Assembly (NCBI GenBank): GCA_965649825.1
Contig: OZ287702.1
Coordinates: 62,001-126,000, forward strand
Direction: 5' to 3'
Length of the DNA: 64,000 nt
From: Penicillus capitatus
Lineage: Eukaryota; Plantae; Chlorophyta
The notes under the pieces: model-generated
Databases searched by the model: none
What the model was told of the DNA's origin: nothing
The model's input: the letters and a program-made list of their open reading frames with translations, nothing else
Program-made: the position numbers and the translations under genes
Shown here: in pieces, positions 11,094-46,288 of the stretch
How positions within the stretch are numbered: the stretch's first letter is position 1
Layout: each line of letters opens with the position of its first letter

Positions 11094-12365
11094 TTATGCT
11101 AGACGAGATTGCAGAGAAATCGCGAATTCTGCCATTTGAACTCATAATTTCTTCGACGACCAAACAGACGGCCAATCGCGAACTGAGAACTTCCAGTCTG
11201 TAGGCAGGATGTGTCGGCATGCTGAGCATTTCAGGAGATGATCTCTTGTCTCTGGCACGCGACCGCAAAAGCGGCAAAGAATTGAGTCTCCATCGGCGGT
11301 ATTGAGCAAATTAAACCTGTTGAGATAAACACGGGTTGCCAGGTGGCCTGTTAGGAATCTGCAGAGGGCTGTGAACTGTCTTCTGCTGTGTGCTTTCCAC
11401 CATTTCAACCGAGTCATCTTAACCTTGTCAAAGCACGTGGCTTTCAGAGAGCTTGCACGATCCGTCGATTCCCAAGCGATCTTCCCCTTCGAGTCTGCAA
11501 ATGATGAGGCTTCAAAACGCAGTAACTCGAAACCAGCTTGATCGCCGCCATTCATGGATTCTAGAGTGATCTTTTCCCATCTATCCAGTTTTTCTTGCGA
11601 CAGGAACTCTTCGTAACGGTTCCTGATGGGGAACAGCGGTGAGTCATAAGTTCCAGCCAATGCAGGACGAAGATCGTAGAAGGACAAATCTTCCAGTTTG
11701 ACCTTAGCAAGAAGAGAGTGTCGAGTGATTTCATCATCGGGGAGCCTTAGGCCCGCTAGGGCTAATACTGCTGCTGTTGATGTGGTGCGAAGATCCCCAG
11801 TGATGAGGAGGGCACCAGACCGAATGACCGACATCAAGGACTTCCTCTTCTGCGTTAGGGCTCTACTACCGGATGACCAGATCAGGGCTCCGTAGTAGAG
11901 GACTGGTGCAACGCATGCCTGGAACGGTGTACGCAGGACGCCAGGAGTGGCACCCCGTAAACTGTTGCTGATCCGTTTGATGGACTCCAGTCGTCGCTGT
12001 GCTTTCATGCAGACTCCCGAGACGTGAGCGCTGAAGTTTAGCTTGCTGTCCATTTTCAGCCCGAGGTAAGTGAATTGTGGTTCTTCTTGCAATAGGGAGC
12101 CGTCCAGATTCACTTGGATCGATGTGGCCTTTCGGAGTCTTGAGAAGCGTAATAGATGGCTTTTGCTGGCATTAAACTGCATTCCGTTGAGTGTTGCCCA
12201 CTGGACGGCCTTCTTCAAGGAGGACTCGAGATGTGCTTGGCCTTCGCCCCGTGGGCCAATCTGGCAGTATAGCAGACAGTCATCAGCGAATAGACAGCAT
12301 TTCACCTCAGGGGGAACTGAGTTTGCGAGGCTGTTGACAAAGCACAGCACAAAAGGGATGCCAAA
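11094..12365 (-). mobile_element. 5'-truncated non-LTR retrotransposon (LINE): RT C-terminal part plus CCHC finger
   Basis: A 402-aa intronless ORF carries LFADD (YADD-type catalytic motif), FTYLGLKMDSKLNFSAHV, PVLYYGALIW, CRFLTGH and CRFCGRVPETRDHLLKC. The endonuclease, ORF1 and RT N-terminus are absent. Confidence 0.9.
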
Positions 12366-18764: not shown

Positions 18765-20514
18765 ATGGGCGTTGATTGGAGTGCGCAGAATCAACAGATG
18801 CTAGACGAAATCGATAGAGACTTTCAAGAAGTGCGTCTCCCATTCCATACGACACTAGATCTTGCAGGGTTGACCGTCCACACTAATTTAGGCCAAATCC
18901 GAGACGATGGCCACGGGGGTTGGAATTCAATTGCTCAAGTTTGGCTACACCGACGCATCTCTGACCAATCTTGACTGGTCGTTCGTTTCGGCAAACGCTC
19001 TTCCCCGTTTCTACGACGCTAACGAGGATTCACCTTCAAAACCGACGACCAATTGGCGACTCGAGATTGAGGCCGGTGATATCGACGCGGAGGTGGCACA
19101 TAGTTTAGAACTGCTTGGAGATAGGCAAGCACAGAGGGTGACATTTCGCTGCGGCGACGCATGGGCTCTCAAATTTCCCAACGCCAAATCTTACATGCAT
19201 TTTTGGAATGACTACAACAACAAGCTCTTCGAAAACATCTACGGCGCAACGAACACTCAAGCCAATCGCGAGGAACACCTTGGACGCGATTTCGCCTCGA
19301 AACTCTTCACAGAAGATGAGAAGGAGGAAGACATGGATTGGCAAGAAGAAGTTATAGAAGATGACGTCAAGCAAGAAGATGCCAGACACGATACAAACGC
19401 AAAAGATCCTCTCGTGGGTGATAAAGACATTTCTCTGATCAAGCTGGGCATCGGTAACAAGAGCTACAGCGTCCGCGGGCAGAACGTTTCCGTACTGCAG
19501 AACATATCGTCTGGTGTGGAAGACACGGGACAGGATTTCACTCTGTGCAAACCAGACGGTACAGTGGTGAAGCCATCGGTCGTGATGCTTGCCGACTGTG
19601 AGCGGAAGATGGGCATGTTGCACGAAGGCGATGCGCATTCTCTGCTTTATGCAGATGTGGAATCTGGAAAAGTGGTGCAGGAATGTCGATTCAAGAAGGA
19701 CGATGTCGACATTCCGATGACAGAGATCGTGGCAGAGACCAAGAGTGCTCCTGCCGAAGATCGATCCACGTTCCTGAGTTACGATCGAAATCGATTGTGT
19801 CGATGGGATATGCGTGATCCAACAGGCATTGTGCAACAGCATGAACCGGCATTGGATTTTATTGGCGGCAAAGACTATGCTCAGTATACAAACTTTACAA
19901 GCATGGCGTCGACGGGAGATGGATCCGTAGTGGTGGGATCTGCCGATGGCAAGATTCGTTTGTACAGCAATAAACTCACGCTGAAACGTGCATCGACGGC
20001 CTTCCCAGGAATTGGGACACCTATTACACATATTGATGTGACGTATGATGGCAAATGGGTCATTGCAACAACCGATCACTTTATTGAGATTATCAAGACG
20101 ACGGCAAAAGATGCCGACGGAAAATCAGTAGAAGGGTATCGTAAATCCCTGGCATCGCTCGCCACTCGGCCGAAGCTTCTCAAACTGAAACCAGAGGACA
20201 CTATACGAACGGGCCATGCCCCTTTGAGGAAAGGCAGATTTACATTTGTGACTGAAGCCAGTCATCAAGAACGGTGGATCGTTGCCACCTGCGGAAGCTA
20301 TTCTGTTCTGTGGAACTTTCGTCAGGTGAAGATGATGACCAACGATCATCGTGCAAGTGGAGGATTGCCAACATGTGTGGCCTATCATTTGGTGTGCAAG
20401 GATGAACCTGTCGTCGATTCTTGTTTCTCGCATGAATCACGTCAATCTGGAAGCCAGTCGGAAGCTGCCTTAGTTGTGGCAACGCAGCACAAAGTGTGGT
20501 CGTTTTATGATTAG
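18765..20514 (+). CDS. VID27: VID27/CYPRO4-like protein (PH-like plus WD40-like domain)
   Basis: NRLCRWDMRDPTGIVQ, TNFTSMASTGDGSVVVGSADGKIRLYS and ASTAFPGIGTPITHIDVTYDGKWVIATTD are diagnostic. Confidence 0.9.
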
Positions 20515-22877: not shown

Positions 22878-23708
22878 TTAGAATCGTGGCTTTCTTTTAC
22901 GGGCTGTGAATTTTGTGTCAGCCGGGATCTCTTCATGACCCTTTGATCGTCTCCGTGCCTTTTTGCTGAGCACCCATTCTCGGCGCTTTTCGATTTTCTT
23001 GTTGTGTGACCGCGTCCGGCGATGTGACACATCGACGGTCACTCTTTCAGACATTGCATCCTCGTCATCGCCTTCTGGTAATGGTCCTGTGCCGACCATC
23101 AACACCAGATACGTCTTCCTCGCACGTGTGCTGTTTGGATAGTCCACCACCAATCCTCCAGTAAATCCAGCTTCCATCGCTGCTCTCGTTAGCATTTCGG
23201 ACTGTGCACTGTCTCGAGGATAAAACTGGAGCACGGCACGAGCATCTTTAGCGAGACATCGATAAAGCGTGCGAAAAAAGAGATGCAATCGCTTTCGAGG
23301 GTCGGCAGTCGATGTGTCCGCATTGCAGAGCCATTGAAGAGCAGAAATGCTGATGGCACCGTCAAATACCCCTGCACGAAACGGCACTCCTTCTCCCAGA
23401 TCGGAGAGACACAGGTGCCCCTCAACTTCGCGTTCTAGAGCCACGGAAAGCATCGCCTCGCTGATGTCCAGTCCCATCCAGAGATGGCCTTCCTCCTCCA
23501 AGATCTCTCCACTCAGTCCTGAGCCGCATCCCAAATCTAGCAGGAGCTTTGGAATGCCATCCTCTGGCAGGTGCAGCAATTCGACGGCGCGACGTGTCAG
23601 CTGTGTCTGGACTTCGATGATACGATTGTTGTTTGTATACTTGCGTGCCTCTGTGGCATTGTAAAAGATCTCTGGAGGACCTTGGAGCTCGGGACGATCT
23701 CCTCCCAT
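22878..23708 (-). CDS. BUD23: 18S rRNA (guanine-N7)-methyltransferase
   Basis: RPELQGPPEIFYNATEARKY, LLDLGCGSGLSGEIL, FDGAISISALQWLCNAD, GFTGGLVVDYPNSTRARKTYLVL and a C-terminal DTKFTARKRKPRF. Confidence 0.95.
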   Translation of the reverse strand: MGGDRPELQGPPEIFYNATEARKYTNNNRIIEVQTQLTRRAVELLHLPEDGIPKLLLDLGCGSGLSGEILEEEGHLWMGLDISEAMLSVALEREVEGHLCLSDLGEGVPFRAGVFDGAISISALQWLCNADTSTADPRKRLHLFFRTLYRCLAKDARAVLQFYPRDSAQSEMLTRAAMEAGFTGGLVVDYPNSTRARKTYLVLMVGTGPLPEGDDEDAMSERVTVDVSHRRTRSHNKKIEKRREWVLSKKARRRSKGHEEIPADTKFTARKRKPRF

Positions 23709-41700: not shown

Positions 41701-42503
41701 CACCAAAAACACCTCAGTCGGCTCATGTCTGGGGCTGAAGAGGAGGTAAGGACGCAATTCTGCAGCCGCGTGTCACAAGTGTGTGTCTTTAGTCGACTGG
41801 ACTGACGATTTACGACATTCCTCCAGAACAGGAGCCGTGGCATGAGCATCCAAGAGCAGGGAACAATCCGCCGTCGCGTCCCTCCCATCCACGACCTCAG
41901 TTTGCCATTGACAGAGATGCTGCCCATCGTTTTGTTGTCCATTCCGTCAGTGGTCCGCGTTTCAAAGATGAAGCTCCTCAACGTTCGACACCGCAAAAAT
42001 TCGCTCTCCGTGCATCTGCTCCTGAGTTTGTGCCAGAGCACGTAACCAGGATGGCGATGCAAATGACAGGGCATCTTGGCAGTACAAGTCCATCGATATG
42101 TCCACCCCCCGTTCCACCAGATGCCGTAACCGCCGCAGCCATTCGATTGAGTGAACGTGCAAGAAGGCAGCCGATGGTTGGGAACCTGCAGCCGATGTTC
42201 CCAATGACACCGCAGCATCAGCATCAGCAGCACAATATCCATCCCCATTACTCGCCTCTCATGATGCCACAGTTTCCTGCTGGATTTCAATCTTTCATGC
42301 CACAGTCTCCTATGCAAGGAGGACAGCAGCCGCACATCCGTGGACCTGCTTTTTTCGAACCGCGTCCGCATGGTTTGGGAAATGTCAGGACACCACCGCC
42401 ACATTCGCAGAGGCCACCGCAAGGACACGTAGGAAATTTTCGCGCATCGCCGCAGAGAGGTGGAGAGGTCAAGAGACCCCAAAGCAACAAAAGAAAGAAG
42501 TGA
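38769..42503 (+). CDS. XRN3: 5'-3' exoribonuclease XRN2/XRN3 (Rat1)-like, multi-exon
   Basis: [76 protein letters not shown] and [19 protein letters not shown], with a Pro/Gln-rich tail. Confidence 0.95.
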
Positions 42504-42701
42504 CCGACCTCTTTCGCTCTCTTGAATTGGGATATGCAAAACACGGTGTGATTGAGATCCATCAATAAAGGAGACCATGCATGAATTGATAAGGTAGCTG
42601 TCGGGATGGATACCGAAGTTGTGTGTTATCCATCTCGTATTCACTGTCACATCATTATCGCGTTTAGTCCCGCGCGTCTTTTCGCGTTTCGCTTATCGCA
42701 C

Positions 42702-44926
42702 ATGTCTGGCGAAGATCATAACTGTGACGGGCGAATGGGGTCAGCGAGTGAGACAGAAGGATTGACGGAGCTCTGTTCCATCTGCTGCGAATCGATCGAT
42801 GTTCCGTCGACGACTGTCTTTTGCGGTGACTAAGGGGAATATTCTTGAAGGCGGTGGCGGTGGGAGCATGTCAACATGCGTTAACTTGTGCCATCTGTAC
42901 GCTACGTCTGAGGATTTGTTACCGAGACAACGGCTGTCCATTTTGCAAGAGACATCTCAAGAGGGTCTATATCACGAACAAACCGTTGGGCAATGGCGCT
43001 GGACTCAATTACGGACAACTTGTTGCTCAGAGGAATCGATTTGAGACAGACAAAAGATGGCCGAGTGGAATCTGGGTGGACAAACAGAGTCTTTGCTCCG
43101 GGCAGCCTCTTGTACAGTATCTGAAATCGAAGATGAAAAGAACGTGTCGTTTGTGTGACCCCTCTGGAACCTGCTCGGAAGAATTTCAATCTTTCAAAGA
43201 CATGAGAGACCATTTCAGAAAACGGCACCACAAATCCACGATCTGCAATGTTTGTTATCAAGTGCGAGCTCTGTTCGTTGAGAGAGCATCCGTTCGATGG
43301 ACGGAGATTTAGGCAAATCGTTACTTTCCACGAGAGCTGGAGATTTTTGAGAACGACGAGAATCTTGCGGCGCATTTGGAATCGCATCCCCAATGCGAAT
43401 ACTGTGGGCATCGTTATTTTGGAAAGGACGAGCTCTTCAGTCACATGCGAAAAAAGCACTGTCTCTGCCAGCTATGCCACAGCCAAGGTCGTCGACATGT
43501 CTACTTTGAGAACACCGAGCACTATAGGCAACACTTGAGGTAGGGATGGAGGTAGATGCCGCTCTCGGGGCCTCCTAATGACAAGGGTGTGTTTGGCAGA
43601 GAAATGCATTTTGCGTGTATGGAGGCGGAATGCCGAGAGAGTTTGATTGCCTTCAATACGGCTGAGGAATTGAACGATCATTTGGCAGAGCATCATGGAA
43701 TACAGCCAGCAGGACGACGCGGGACACGGACACTGCATCCACAGTTCCTTGGCATGGGATCGAGAAATCGAACAGCGCCGTCGCAAGCACACACTCAACG
43801 AAGAGGGTTCGCGGGCAATGAACTGCAGCGACGGTAGAGACATTACCTTCAGTTGTACCCCTCTCCTGAGGTTGCGCTGCATAGAGGCGAAACTGGCTTC
43901 CTTATGATCGATGATGATTTGCCGCCTGTTTATGGTGCTGTTCAGCCTGTTCATCGTAACCGACAACCGATTGTGCCTTCTGCTCAAACGTTGCCCAGCC
44001 AGGAAGAGTTTCCAGCATTGCCAGCCGCTTCTCAGCCTCCGCCAAGGCCAATCCTCAATATTCCGAAGAAGGTTTCGATGAAACGGTCCTGCCCTTGTGG
44101 CCGAAATTCCAAAACCGTTCTCGTACCAGAAGGAACTCAACCAGCGCCTCTCGAGTGTGATGCAGAGTGTGAGAGAGCACAACGCCGTGCACGATTGGCT
44201 GAGGCTTTCAACATCGATACTGCCACTTATGCAGGGGCCTTTGACGTCCAGTTTTCTGCAGACCTGATCACATGGGCACGAAACAGGCCTAACGACGTCG
44301 AGCAAATCGAAGATCGGCTGCAACGGCATGTGCGTTTGAGAGATGTGCAGCGCTTTACTCTGGATGGACTGCCAAGAGATACCAAGAAACTTGTCGTATG
44401 CTTGGCAGAGAGCTACGGCGCCGTTGGTCGTGTGATCCATACCTCGAATGCCGTCGAAGTCCTTCTTACCCCTCGAAGCTGCCTGCCCGCCAAACGATTG
44501 GCGCATGTGGCTGGGAAGATGTCCGAAGAGGACTACAACGATCTCCTTAAGGAATCGCTGAAGCAGACGCTCTTTTTGGAGGACATCCAGAAATCTGTCA
44601 ACATCCGACGGTATCTCATCAGTTGGGATGGAGACTACGAGATGGAGTTTCTCTCGAAGACAGTGGCACGATTGAAATTCAGAACACCTCAAGCATTCAA
44701 ATCTGCCTGTGATGCTCTCGGAGGTGGTGTCCGAGATGCTTTCCGCGTCCGGCAGCCACTCAGCGACATCCAACGCCAGAAAGAGACTGCTGCACTTCCA
44801 GGCGATGATCCGGCTGCCGTGAAGGGACGTTCAGTGAATCCAAAATCGACAGTCCGTTCTGCAAAGGGGAAAGAGGGTGAACAGTTGATCCTGCGGAATC
44901 CTTTTCAAGTGTTGAGTCGATTGTGA
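42702..44926 (+). CDS. ZNF598: ZNF598/Hel2-like RING plus C2H2 E3 ligase with an NFX1/NFXL1-type C-terminal module
   Basis: CSICCESID/AVAVGACQHALTCAICTLRLRICYRDNGCPFCK and HPQCEYCGHRYFGKDELFSHMRKKHCLCQLC. The C-terminus has SCPCGR...LECDAECERAQRRARLAEAFNI. Confidence 0.8.
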
Positions 44927-44976: not shown

Positions 44977-46288
44977 ATGGACAGACTGCTTCGCGAAATT
45001 TATCGCCGCCATACTAGTATCCAACCGTCAGGTCCAATGGGATCCCATTCGCCCGGCGTGTGTCACATCAGACATCGTAGACGTGAAGCTGTGCGGGTTG
45101 CTTTTTCCATTTAGCTTCGCAGGATGCAAGCACCGTACGTCACTTTCTCAAACGGATCCCGTGATGCATCAAGCATTTCCACGCTTTGTTTAGGGGATAC
45201 TATCCTCCGTCTCAAGGTCCTCGTCCCTCCGCCCTACCACGCACCGAAGACGAAGGAAATGTCGTCCTTTGTATGGTACTTCCAGACTGCCTAATACTAC
45301 CCGTGGTCTCATTGGAGAGAACGGTTGGTTGTATGACTAGGTGGATAACATGATGTATCCCATCACAGAGGACGCCTTGGAGACGGTCGTGAAAGCTTAC
45401 GGAGAAGTTGTCCAACGTGTGATTTACGAGCGTTCTGGTGTCTGGCAAGTCAGTAGACCATCCTGCTGCCGTTTCAAAGATGTAGAGAGATGTGTCCTTA
45501 GGCCGTTGTGCAGTATGCCACAGCAGCCAGCGCGAATTCTGCTAAACAAGCATTGGAGGGGCATGCCATCTATGAGGGAGGTTACAATAAGGTATAGGAG
45601 AGCCCATGACCGAAGGAATTGACAGCAGAGTGGATTGTCTGCAGTTGCGAGTATTCAACTCGACCAAACACGCCTTAGCCTATGCCACAGCGGCAATCGC
45701 GATGCCGGAGTATAAACTCTCAGACCAAGAGGCCGCGAATGTCAGGACTGTTGGTGAGAGATGAAAGAAATTTACCACGCGCGATCATAAGATGGCGATC
45801 ATCTGTCGTAGTGAATGGGGATGACTACGTGCGTGCCCACAGTGACATTGGAAGAGGGACCTTTGCCGCTCTTTCTGGACAGCCTCTTCCACCATCCTAC
45901 GTTCCAACAACGATTCCACCAAGTTCGTTCCGTTGCGTCAGGATGTTTCTCATTGGATGTGTGTGCTATAGTGGGAACCCAGCCGCCAATAGGCACTGTC
46001 CCTGTCGGGGGTCCACAGATGTATGTGCGACCCTCCGATCCTTACATGAACGGACCCCCTCCTCAAGGTCCTTATCCATCACCTGCCTTGTCATCTGGAA
46101 GTTATCATCACATGCAGCAATCCTCGAATTTTCCAAGAATGATAGATGCGCGCAGTACACGTCCGATACCAATGACAACATATCAACAGCACCCGGTGCA
46201 GCATCACATGCAGCCACAAGTTGCGCCCAATCGCAATTCGCACAGTATCCTCCTTCTTTATCAGGAAAGAGAGCGGAAGGGCGATTGA
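44977..46288 (+). CDS. PTB/hnRNP-L-type RRM protein with Pro/Gln-rich tail
   Basis: NMMYPITEDALETVVKAYGEV...ALVQY...AKQALEGHAIYEGGYNK/LRV resembles plant PTB (EGHCIYDGGFCKL). Confidence 0.7.

Follow-up and report, generated by a model that had tools for sequence, protein, structure and literature searches.

A ZNF598/Hel2-type ubiquitin ligase with a predicted NFX1/Fap1-type tail in the green alga Penicillus capitatus and its relatives

When a stretch of DNA appears to begin as one ribosome-marking ubiquitin ligase and to end as another, a simple question arises: does it encode a single protein and, if so, of what kind? The case considered here is a gene at positions 42702 to 44926, on the plus strand, of a 64,000-nucleotide (nt) stretch of DNA from the green alga Penicillus capitatus (assembly GCA_965649825.1, contig OZ287702.1, positions 62,001 to 126,000; hereafter, the window). 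Among the ligases that mark faulty ribosomes, the two understood best are ZNF598, with its yeast counterpart Hel2, and Fap1, and they are thought to read different states, namely, collided ribosomes and lone stalled ribosomes, respectively. A preliminary description of the locus, all quoted peptide strings of which were recovered on the plus strand where it had placed them, proposed that a ZNF598/Hel2-type front half is joined here to the back half of an NFX1/NFXL1 (Fap1) protein, two ligase modules being fused.

The comparisons described below lead to a related but different view. The encoded protein is very probably a green-algal ligase of the ZNF598/Hel2 type that carries a non-catalytic tail homologous to that of NFX1, Fap1 and NFXL1. 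The fuller reading, in which this green-algal form of the ZNF598/Hel2 ribosome ligase would also use its tail for a contact at the 40S subunit or RNA, is given a probability of about 0.6. Two close relatives recur throughout the argument: L002, a contig from a Joint Genome Institute (JGI) sample, and L003, the orthologous gene of a sister species.

The head and the tail of the protein

Residues 1 to about 370 of the 670-residue product are of the ZNF598/Hel2 type, as had been proposed. The C3HC4 RING, which extends from C25 to C65 and is split by intron 1 (42774..42946, plus strand, as are all features of the gene), matches the Pfam family RING_ZNF598 (PF25447) in the corrected gene model with 31.5 bits, the cut-off being 27; in an alignment of 19 family members, its ligands C25, C28, C40, H42, C46, C49, C62 and C65 are invariant. 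An array of C2H2-type fingers follows (residues 132-278; 43145..43696), which is split by introns 2 and 3 and includes the HPxCxFC signature. The Cys and His ligands of these fingers are likewise invariant in the 19-member alignment, except for C135 and C257, which are retained in at least 90% of the sequences. Furthermore, BLASTP aligns residues 23-285 with a protein of Cryptococcus neoformans, P0186, with E=3e-35, colinearly over the RING and every finger. P0186 carries RING_ZNF598 (PF25447), zf-C2H2_13 (PF23230) and PAH_ZNF598 (PF23202), and is itself scored by the family profile at E=3e-69.

Some of the expected Pfam matches are missing from this half of the algal protein. Single exons gave just weak generic RING or C2H2 matches, zf-C2H2_13 stayed below the cut-off in the window protein, and PAH_ZNF598 was unmatched at E<=1 in the window protein, in L002 and in the Bryopsis relative, as compared to 69 bits in Cryptococcus. 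The fungal members retrieved typically have the PAH domain, which may be an accessory and not a defining feature; since it is unmatched here, the algal protein is filed as a variant of ZNF598 and not as a canonical member.

The fingers are followed by a linker (43904..44023), modelled with low confidence (predicted local distance difference test, pLDDT, of 50-60), which contains the motifs MIDDDLPP and EEFPALP (44003-44023). Within it, D333, D334 and F366 are nearly invariant, and P367 and L369 are invariant in the 19-member alignment; FPSL/FPAL motifs are present also in P0186. The ZNF598-like part of the protein extends to EEFPALP (residues 364-370), and the NFX-like part starts near residue 377-385. 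Accordingly, of the initial suggestion that the halves are joined via an intron, one element holds, namely, that splicing is required for the junction, whereas the seam itself sits inside exon 5, at about nt 44025-44070.

From residue ~385 to its end at 670, the protein is homologous to the tail of NFX1, Fap1 and NFXL1. This part opens with an NFX-type zinc knuckle (C393, C395, C415 and C419) and an RRARLAEAF helix (44069..44206), a motif common to NFX-type proteins and Fap1, and continues with a helical lead-in and an R3H-like domain (44258..44485). A C-terminal RRM-like domain of the NFXL1 type (44567..44755) comes next, and the protein closes with the motif NPFQVLSRL (44897..44923), which aligns with NPFKVLDQV of the NFXL1-type protein P0092 (residues ~360-368 of 433) and is kept in L002 and L003.

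The relationship becomes visible at the level of families: Pfam gave no match to the exon-5 translation alone, and a single-sequence search of the tail against the PDB gave none either, a family profile being required. In an exhaustive HMMER search of 1.84 billion representatives, the exon-5 piece retrieved 120 relatives; among the 45 relatives longer than 400 residues, Pfam recognized R3H in 42, RING_ZNF598 in 20, and zf-NF-X1 and RRM_NFXL1 in three each. A pattern search found the motif CxCG...C[DN]xxC...R..LAxAF in ZNF598-type and NF-X1-type proteins alike. With P0092, which combines an NF-X1 finger with R3H and RRM_NFXL1, the tail is colinear over ~300 residues (E=3e-13), up to and through the shared N-P-F-x-V-L, and its RRM-like domain aligns to the RRM_NFXL1 stretch of that protein. 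When a profile of 22 ZNF598-type tails was compared with a profile of NF-X1-type tails by hhalign, the probability was 100% with E=1.8e-41 over 228 columns, the R3H-like region included; the family profile also matched residues 635-830 of yeast Fap1 (PDB 7zw0, chain sh) with E=1e-17, other R3H domains being far weaker.

The predicted structure points in the same direction. In the AlphaFold model of the tail, pLDDT exceeds 90 over residues 60-290 of the piece, both the R3H-like and the RRM-like domain included. The knuckle region, modelled with pLDDT ~90, consists of a beta-hairpin plus a helix; behind it, a helical lead-in precedes the R3H-like domain, which is of the alpha/beta type, and the RRM-like domain, which has a beta-alpha-beta fold. 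The top fold match of this model in the PDB is Fap1 in the Fap1-80S complex (7zw0; E=6.6e-7), followed by RNA-bound tandem RRM proteins. Taken together, the profile, alignment and fold matches turn what had been a proposed resemblance to the C-terminal module of NFX1, Fap1 and NFXL1, with its RRM-like end, into true homology.

This homology does not cover the catalytic part of the NFX-type proteins. No NF-X1 fingers (PF01422) were matched in the window protein and no NF-X1 finger pattern was seen in any frame of the window; an NFX-type RING is absent from the protein as well. Since the NF-X1 fingers are unmatched, the protein is not a member of the NFX1/Fap1/NFXL1 family: the NFX-derived parts present are only the last zinc knuckle, the helix, the R3H-like domain and the RRM-like domain. 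The proposed fusion of two ligase modules therefore gives way to a protein with a single catalytic RING. The Pfam model RRM_NFXL1 (PF24435) had no direct match in the window protein or in its ZNF598-type relatives. A separate observation concerns the end of the chain: ZNF598-type and NFXL1-type relatives (P0092, P0003, P0025 and P0030) also have, at their C-terminus or close to it, an N-x-F-x-x-L motif like NPFQVLSRL, often followed by acidic residues.

Set beside the known systems, the algal protein shares with human ZNF598 and yeast Hel2 the RING_ZNF598 subtype, the colinear C2H2 array with its HPxCxFC finger, and an FPxL motif after the fingers; it differs in the unmatched PAH domain and in the region beyond the linker, where it has the NFX-type knuckle and the R3H-like and RRM-like domains that the retrieved fungal ZNF598-type proteins lack. 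With yeast Fap1 and human NFX1, it has in common the homologous C-terminal module, that is, the CxCG...CDxxC knuckle, the R..LAEAF helix and the R3H-like domain, but neither the NFX-type RING/PHD finger nor the tandem NF-X1 fingers, its catalytic part being of the ZNF598 type. In the case of NFXL1, including plant NFXL1-NFXL2, the likeness reaches the RRM-like end domain and the terminal N-P-F-x-V-L motif, as aligned with P0092, whereas the N-terminal two thirds are unrelated and Pfam RRM_NFXL1 does not score the algal protein.

What the tail might contribute

On collided ribosomes, proteins of the 40S subunit are marked by Hel2/ZNF598. The RING and the C2H2 array of the algal protein correspond to the catalytic and ribosome-recognition module of ZNF598, and, like ZNF598 and Hel2 themselves, this head would attach ubiquitin to 40S proteins when ribosomes stall or collide. 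The NFX-type tail stands where, in the fungal proteins, the PAH domain follows the fingers. On the ribosome, the homologous part of Fap1 appears to touch single-stranded RNA or the 40S subunit; the algal tail may do likewise, and the ligase would then be tethered or oriented at the mRNA channel. In the decay of non-functional 18S rRNA in yeast, K63 chains on uS3 are extended by Hel2, Rsp5 or Fap1, and on lone stalled ribosomes Fap1 binds the 40S subunit as well as the mRNA, both where it enters and where it exits (PMC9953336). That the algal tail supplies an extra RNA or 40S contact in the manner of this Fap1 region is put forward tentatively and with less confidence than the identity of the protein.

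Several observations weigh against such a role. The R3H signature Arg-x3-His, which is kept in most members of the family, reads Lys...Val in the window protein, Lys...Ile in L002 and Lys...Gln in Bryopsis. Pfam R3H (PF01424), which scores 42 of the 45 long relatives, is silent on the window protein because the signature is degraded in this branch. The R3H-like region of the preliminary description is a homologue by profile and by fold, but its signature Arg and His are replaced, and canonical R3H-type RNA binding may have been lost in the Bryopsidales-related branch. Fap1 itself, however, has Arg at the position of the R3H His, so that the signature is not strictly required and its substitution need not mean loss of function. 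In addition, 40S decay proceeded unchanged in one assay when human NFX1 and NFXL1 were knocked down (PMC12008924), which implies that this tail family is not everywhere tied to ribosome surveillance.

The most serious alternative takes the tail to be an adaptor that targets mRNA: the pair of R3H-like and RRM-like domains would recognize certain mRNAs, or factors associated with poly(A), rather than the ribosome. ZNF598 acts together with GIGYF2-4EHP, and NFX1-123 acts on mRNAs, so analogies for such an arrangement are at hand. R3H plus RRM is a general pair for binding single-stranded RNA, as in the poly(A)-specific ribonuclease PARN, where R3H lies beside RRM as an RNA-binding pair on a catalytic domain; PARN has another catalytic activity, and it is cited as an analogy only, no sequence relation being claimed. 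The fold matches ranked below Fap1, moreover, are ordinary RNA-bound tandem RRMs, the PAH domain of fungal ZNF598 is unmatched here, so that partner binding must differ, and 40S decay was unaffected by depletion of NFX1/NFXL1 in human cells (PMC12008924). Nevertheless, sequence and fold alike single out Fap1 on the 80S ribosome as the nearest solved relative of the tail; the head is the conserved ZNF598 module, the known substrates of which are 40S proteins; and the degraded R3H signature does not favour sequence-specific reading of RNA. All in all, we consider an mRNA-targeting tail rather unlikely, and equally so its corollary that the ligase would ubiquitinate the partners, or repress the mRNAs, that the tail had bound.

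A bolder extension of the ribosome-ligase reading is conceivable, namely, that one algal E3 ubiquitin ligase unites two modes of recognition of stuck ribosomes that are split in yeast between Hel2 and Fap1. Were this the case, the ZNF598 head would read the interface of collided ribosomes and the Fap1-type tail the mRNA at the 40S entry or exit, so that a single enzyme would mark collided as well as singly stalled ribosomes; the tail would then be a portable 40S/mRNA-docking module that was joined to different RING ligases in the evolution of eukaryotes. The portability of the tail is hinted at by a second clade of proteins that carry RING_ZNF598 plus R3H (see below). This idea of a united sensor is best regarded as a long shot; the merged RQC/NRD sensor suggested in the preliminary description is, for its part, a conjecture.

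One continuous gene

The gene runs from the ATG at 42702 to the TGA at 44924-44926 (42702..44926) and comprises five exons and four GT..AG introns of 50-60 nt; its product is colinear with the open reading frame (ORF) of L002 and with the L003 orthologue. Exon 1 (42702..42800; residues 1-33) contains the first two RING cysteines (CSIC), exon 2 (42851..43261; residues 34-170) the remaining RING and the first C2H2 fingers, and exon 3 (43313..43539) the HPQCEYC finger and then further fingers. The final C2H2-type finger and the start of the linker are found in exon 4 (43600..43833), whereas exon 5 (43885..44926) encodes the linker, the entire NFX-type tail and the stop codon.

The position of intron 1 (42801..42850; 50 nt) follows from the RING of L002, which reads CSICC-x4-AVAVGACQHALTCAIC: across the junction, the spliced window gene reads CSICCESID and then AVAVGACQHALTCAIC, in residue-for-residue agreement and free of gaps. 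The 50-nt intron restores the RING spacing and yields the Pfam RING_ZNF598 match. A 41-nt intron 1 at 42826-42866 was ruled out by the comparison with L002; in that model, RING_ZNF598 was unmatched.

L002 is a contig of 2029 nt nearly filled by one uninterrupted ORF of 660 residues that is free of all four introns, and it is from this intron-free frame, extending almost from end to end, that we infer L002 to be a transcript. Its ORF is 56% identical to the spliced 670-residue model from residue 17 to the last and aligns without gaps at all four junctions. L003 lies on a 4.08-Mb contig, where its spliced ORF is open over 668 residues and all four introns retain GT..AG. Between the window and L003, exon mismatches number 50, 47 and 138 at codon positions 1, 2 and 3, respectively, the sole exon indel is one of 6 nt, and both halves are shown to be under purifying selection. 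The introns behave differently: their indels are of 1 nt (intron 1) and 2 nt, the latter a deletion in intron 2 of L003 (43262..43312; 51 nt) that would cause a frameshift in coding sequence, while intron 3 (43540..43599; 60 nt) and intron 4 (43834..43884; 51 nt) are 75% and 69% identical, respectively, as compared to 87-92% for the neighbouring exons (88-92% for those on either side of intron 3).

Intron 4 deserves attention, since its second codon is an in-frame TAG (43835-43837), so that the halves can be joined only by splicing. If this intron were not removed, a ZNF598-like protein would stop at the TAG, and the Met of MIDDD would be the start of an R3H protein of its own, much as the public gene call P0004 draws it, with the last exon only and 340 residues. 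This possibility is very improbable. The intron that had been postulated here is real: it has GT..AG ends and a length similar to that of the other three, and in L003 it diverges far faster than the exons while its splice ends are retained. The two halves lie in one unbroken ORF in L002, with a gap-free junction, and are found together in more than 20 predicted proteins of other algae; P0004, for its part, appears to be an ORF call made without regard to introns. Judging by these comparisons, the gene is real, and its two halves form one reading unit, as the uninterrupted ORF of L002 and the intact spliced ORF of L003 bear out for the original proposal.

Two observations on the annotation and the limits of the gene may be added. 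In the public gene set, P0004, from this organism (340 residues, on a 6.9-Mb contig), and P0185, from the sister species, cover only the last exon (window 43904-44926); the RING and zinc-finger exons are absent from both, that is, the gene is truncated in that set. Upstream, an in-frame ATG at 42606, 96 nt before the chosen start, is a less likely alternative start and would add 32 hydrophobic residues that do not look conserved. The segment 42606-42701 is 92% identical to L003, more so than exon 1, and may hold a regulatory element of the 5' untranslated region.

Distribution, surroundings and significance

Although the joining of the two halves had been treated as if it were singular, it is shared across at least three chlorophyte classes. 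Both halves are found in proteins of Bryopsis, Caulerpa, Myrmecia, Sanguina, Chlorella, Botryococcus, Auxenochlorella, Picochlorum, Chlamydomonas sp. UWO241 and Volvox, which cover Ulvophyceae, Trebouxiophyceae and Chlorophyceae; R3H is present in 42 of the 45 long relatives and RING_ZNF598 in at least 20. Prasinococcus and Symbiochloris have relatives of the tail in which the RING is unconfirmed, and many marine metagenome proteins carry the same architecture. The ZNF598-like genes of Arabidopsis are not known to have an annotated R3H. In a tree built on a shared core of 129 columns, the window protein groups with L002, Caulerpa and Bryopsis with 98% support, which places it in a branch related to the Bryopsidales, and the chlorophyte tails form one well-supported cluster. 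Thus, as far as can be judged from the sequences, ZNF598 with an NFX-type tail is an old architecture conserved in Chlorophyta. A recent chimera particular to this genome, for which nothing speaks beyond the architecture itself, is hardly credible and is refuted by the recurrence of that architecture in these classes and in assemblies of marine picoplankton, by the single well-supported cluster of the chlorophyte tails, and by the same gene with the same introns in the sister species.

The search also brought up a second clade, of proteins of 1100-1350 residues (P0003 and P0196-P0202), which have RING_ZNF598, a C2H2 array and R3H and are devoid of the CxCG zinc knuckle. P0003 is encoded at L001 3551-6829 by an intron-free ORF on a gene-dense eukaryotic contig; in the core tree, this clade falls with NF-X1-type and diatom R3H proteins and not with the green-algal family, the branches being weakly supported. 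Another retrieved protein, P0173, of the P0122 cluster, is deposited as 'MAG: R3H domain-containing nucleic acid-binding protein, partial [bacterium]' and probably represents a eukaryotic contig mis-binned into a bacterial genome.

The gene is surrounded by nuclear DNA of an ordinary kind. Upstream, a Gln/Pro-rich coding region comes to its end at 42503, and downstream another short-intron gene starts near 45341. The latter (45341-45600, plus strand) has a GT..AG intron of ~53 nt (gtcagtag...ccttag), so that a size of ~50 nt seems usual for introns of this genome. The rest of the window contains genes for VID27-like, alpha/beta-hydrolase, Bud23-type methyltransferase, helicase and armadillo-repeat proteins, together with a fragment of a reverse transcriptase. 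Two long intron-free ORFs are of the housekeeping kind, one for a VID27-like WD40 protein (18907-20511, plus strand) and one for a Bud23/WBSCR22-type rRNA methyltransferase (22881-23708, minus strand); an ORF at 11145-12350 (minus strand) has a weak reverse-transcriptase (RVT_1) match and is probably the remnant of a retroelement. A search of the window for a second NFX-type or Hel2-type gene found none. These surrounding genes have no bearing on the fusion.

In public databases, the members of this ZNF598 branch, in which an NFX-type tail takes the place of the PAH region, bear automatic names only, such as 'RING-type E3 ubiquitin transferase', 'E3 ubiquitin-protein ligase ZNF598' and 'R3H domain-containing protein', and the branch is undescribed in the literature found. 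Searches combining ZNF598/Hel2 with R3H or with Chlamydomonas and green algae, and NFXL1 with R3H or RRM, yielded no description of the architecture or of the green-algal orthologue, nor a paper that couples ZNF598 or Hel2 with an R3H domain in this sense. To our knowledge, ribosome quality control in green algae has been little studied. The practical gain is modest; in at least one public gene set, the gene is mis-called, with its last exon only. As to the biology of the family, the presence of a Fap1-type tail on a ZNF598 head across an algal phylum suggests that the tail is a self-contained, transferable docking module. The algal fusion also offers a natural experiment on how the recognition of ribosome states is built, and Chlamydomonas would make the question testable.

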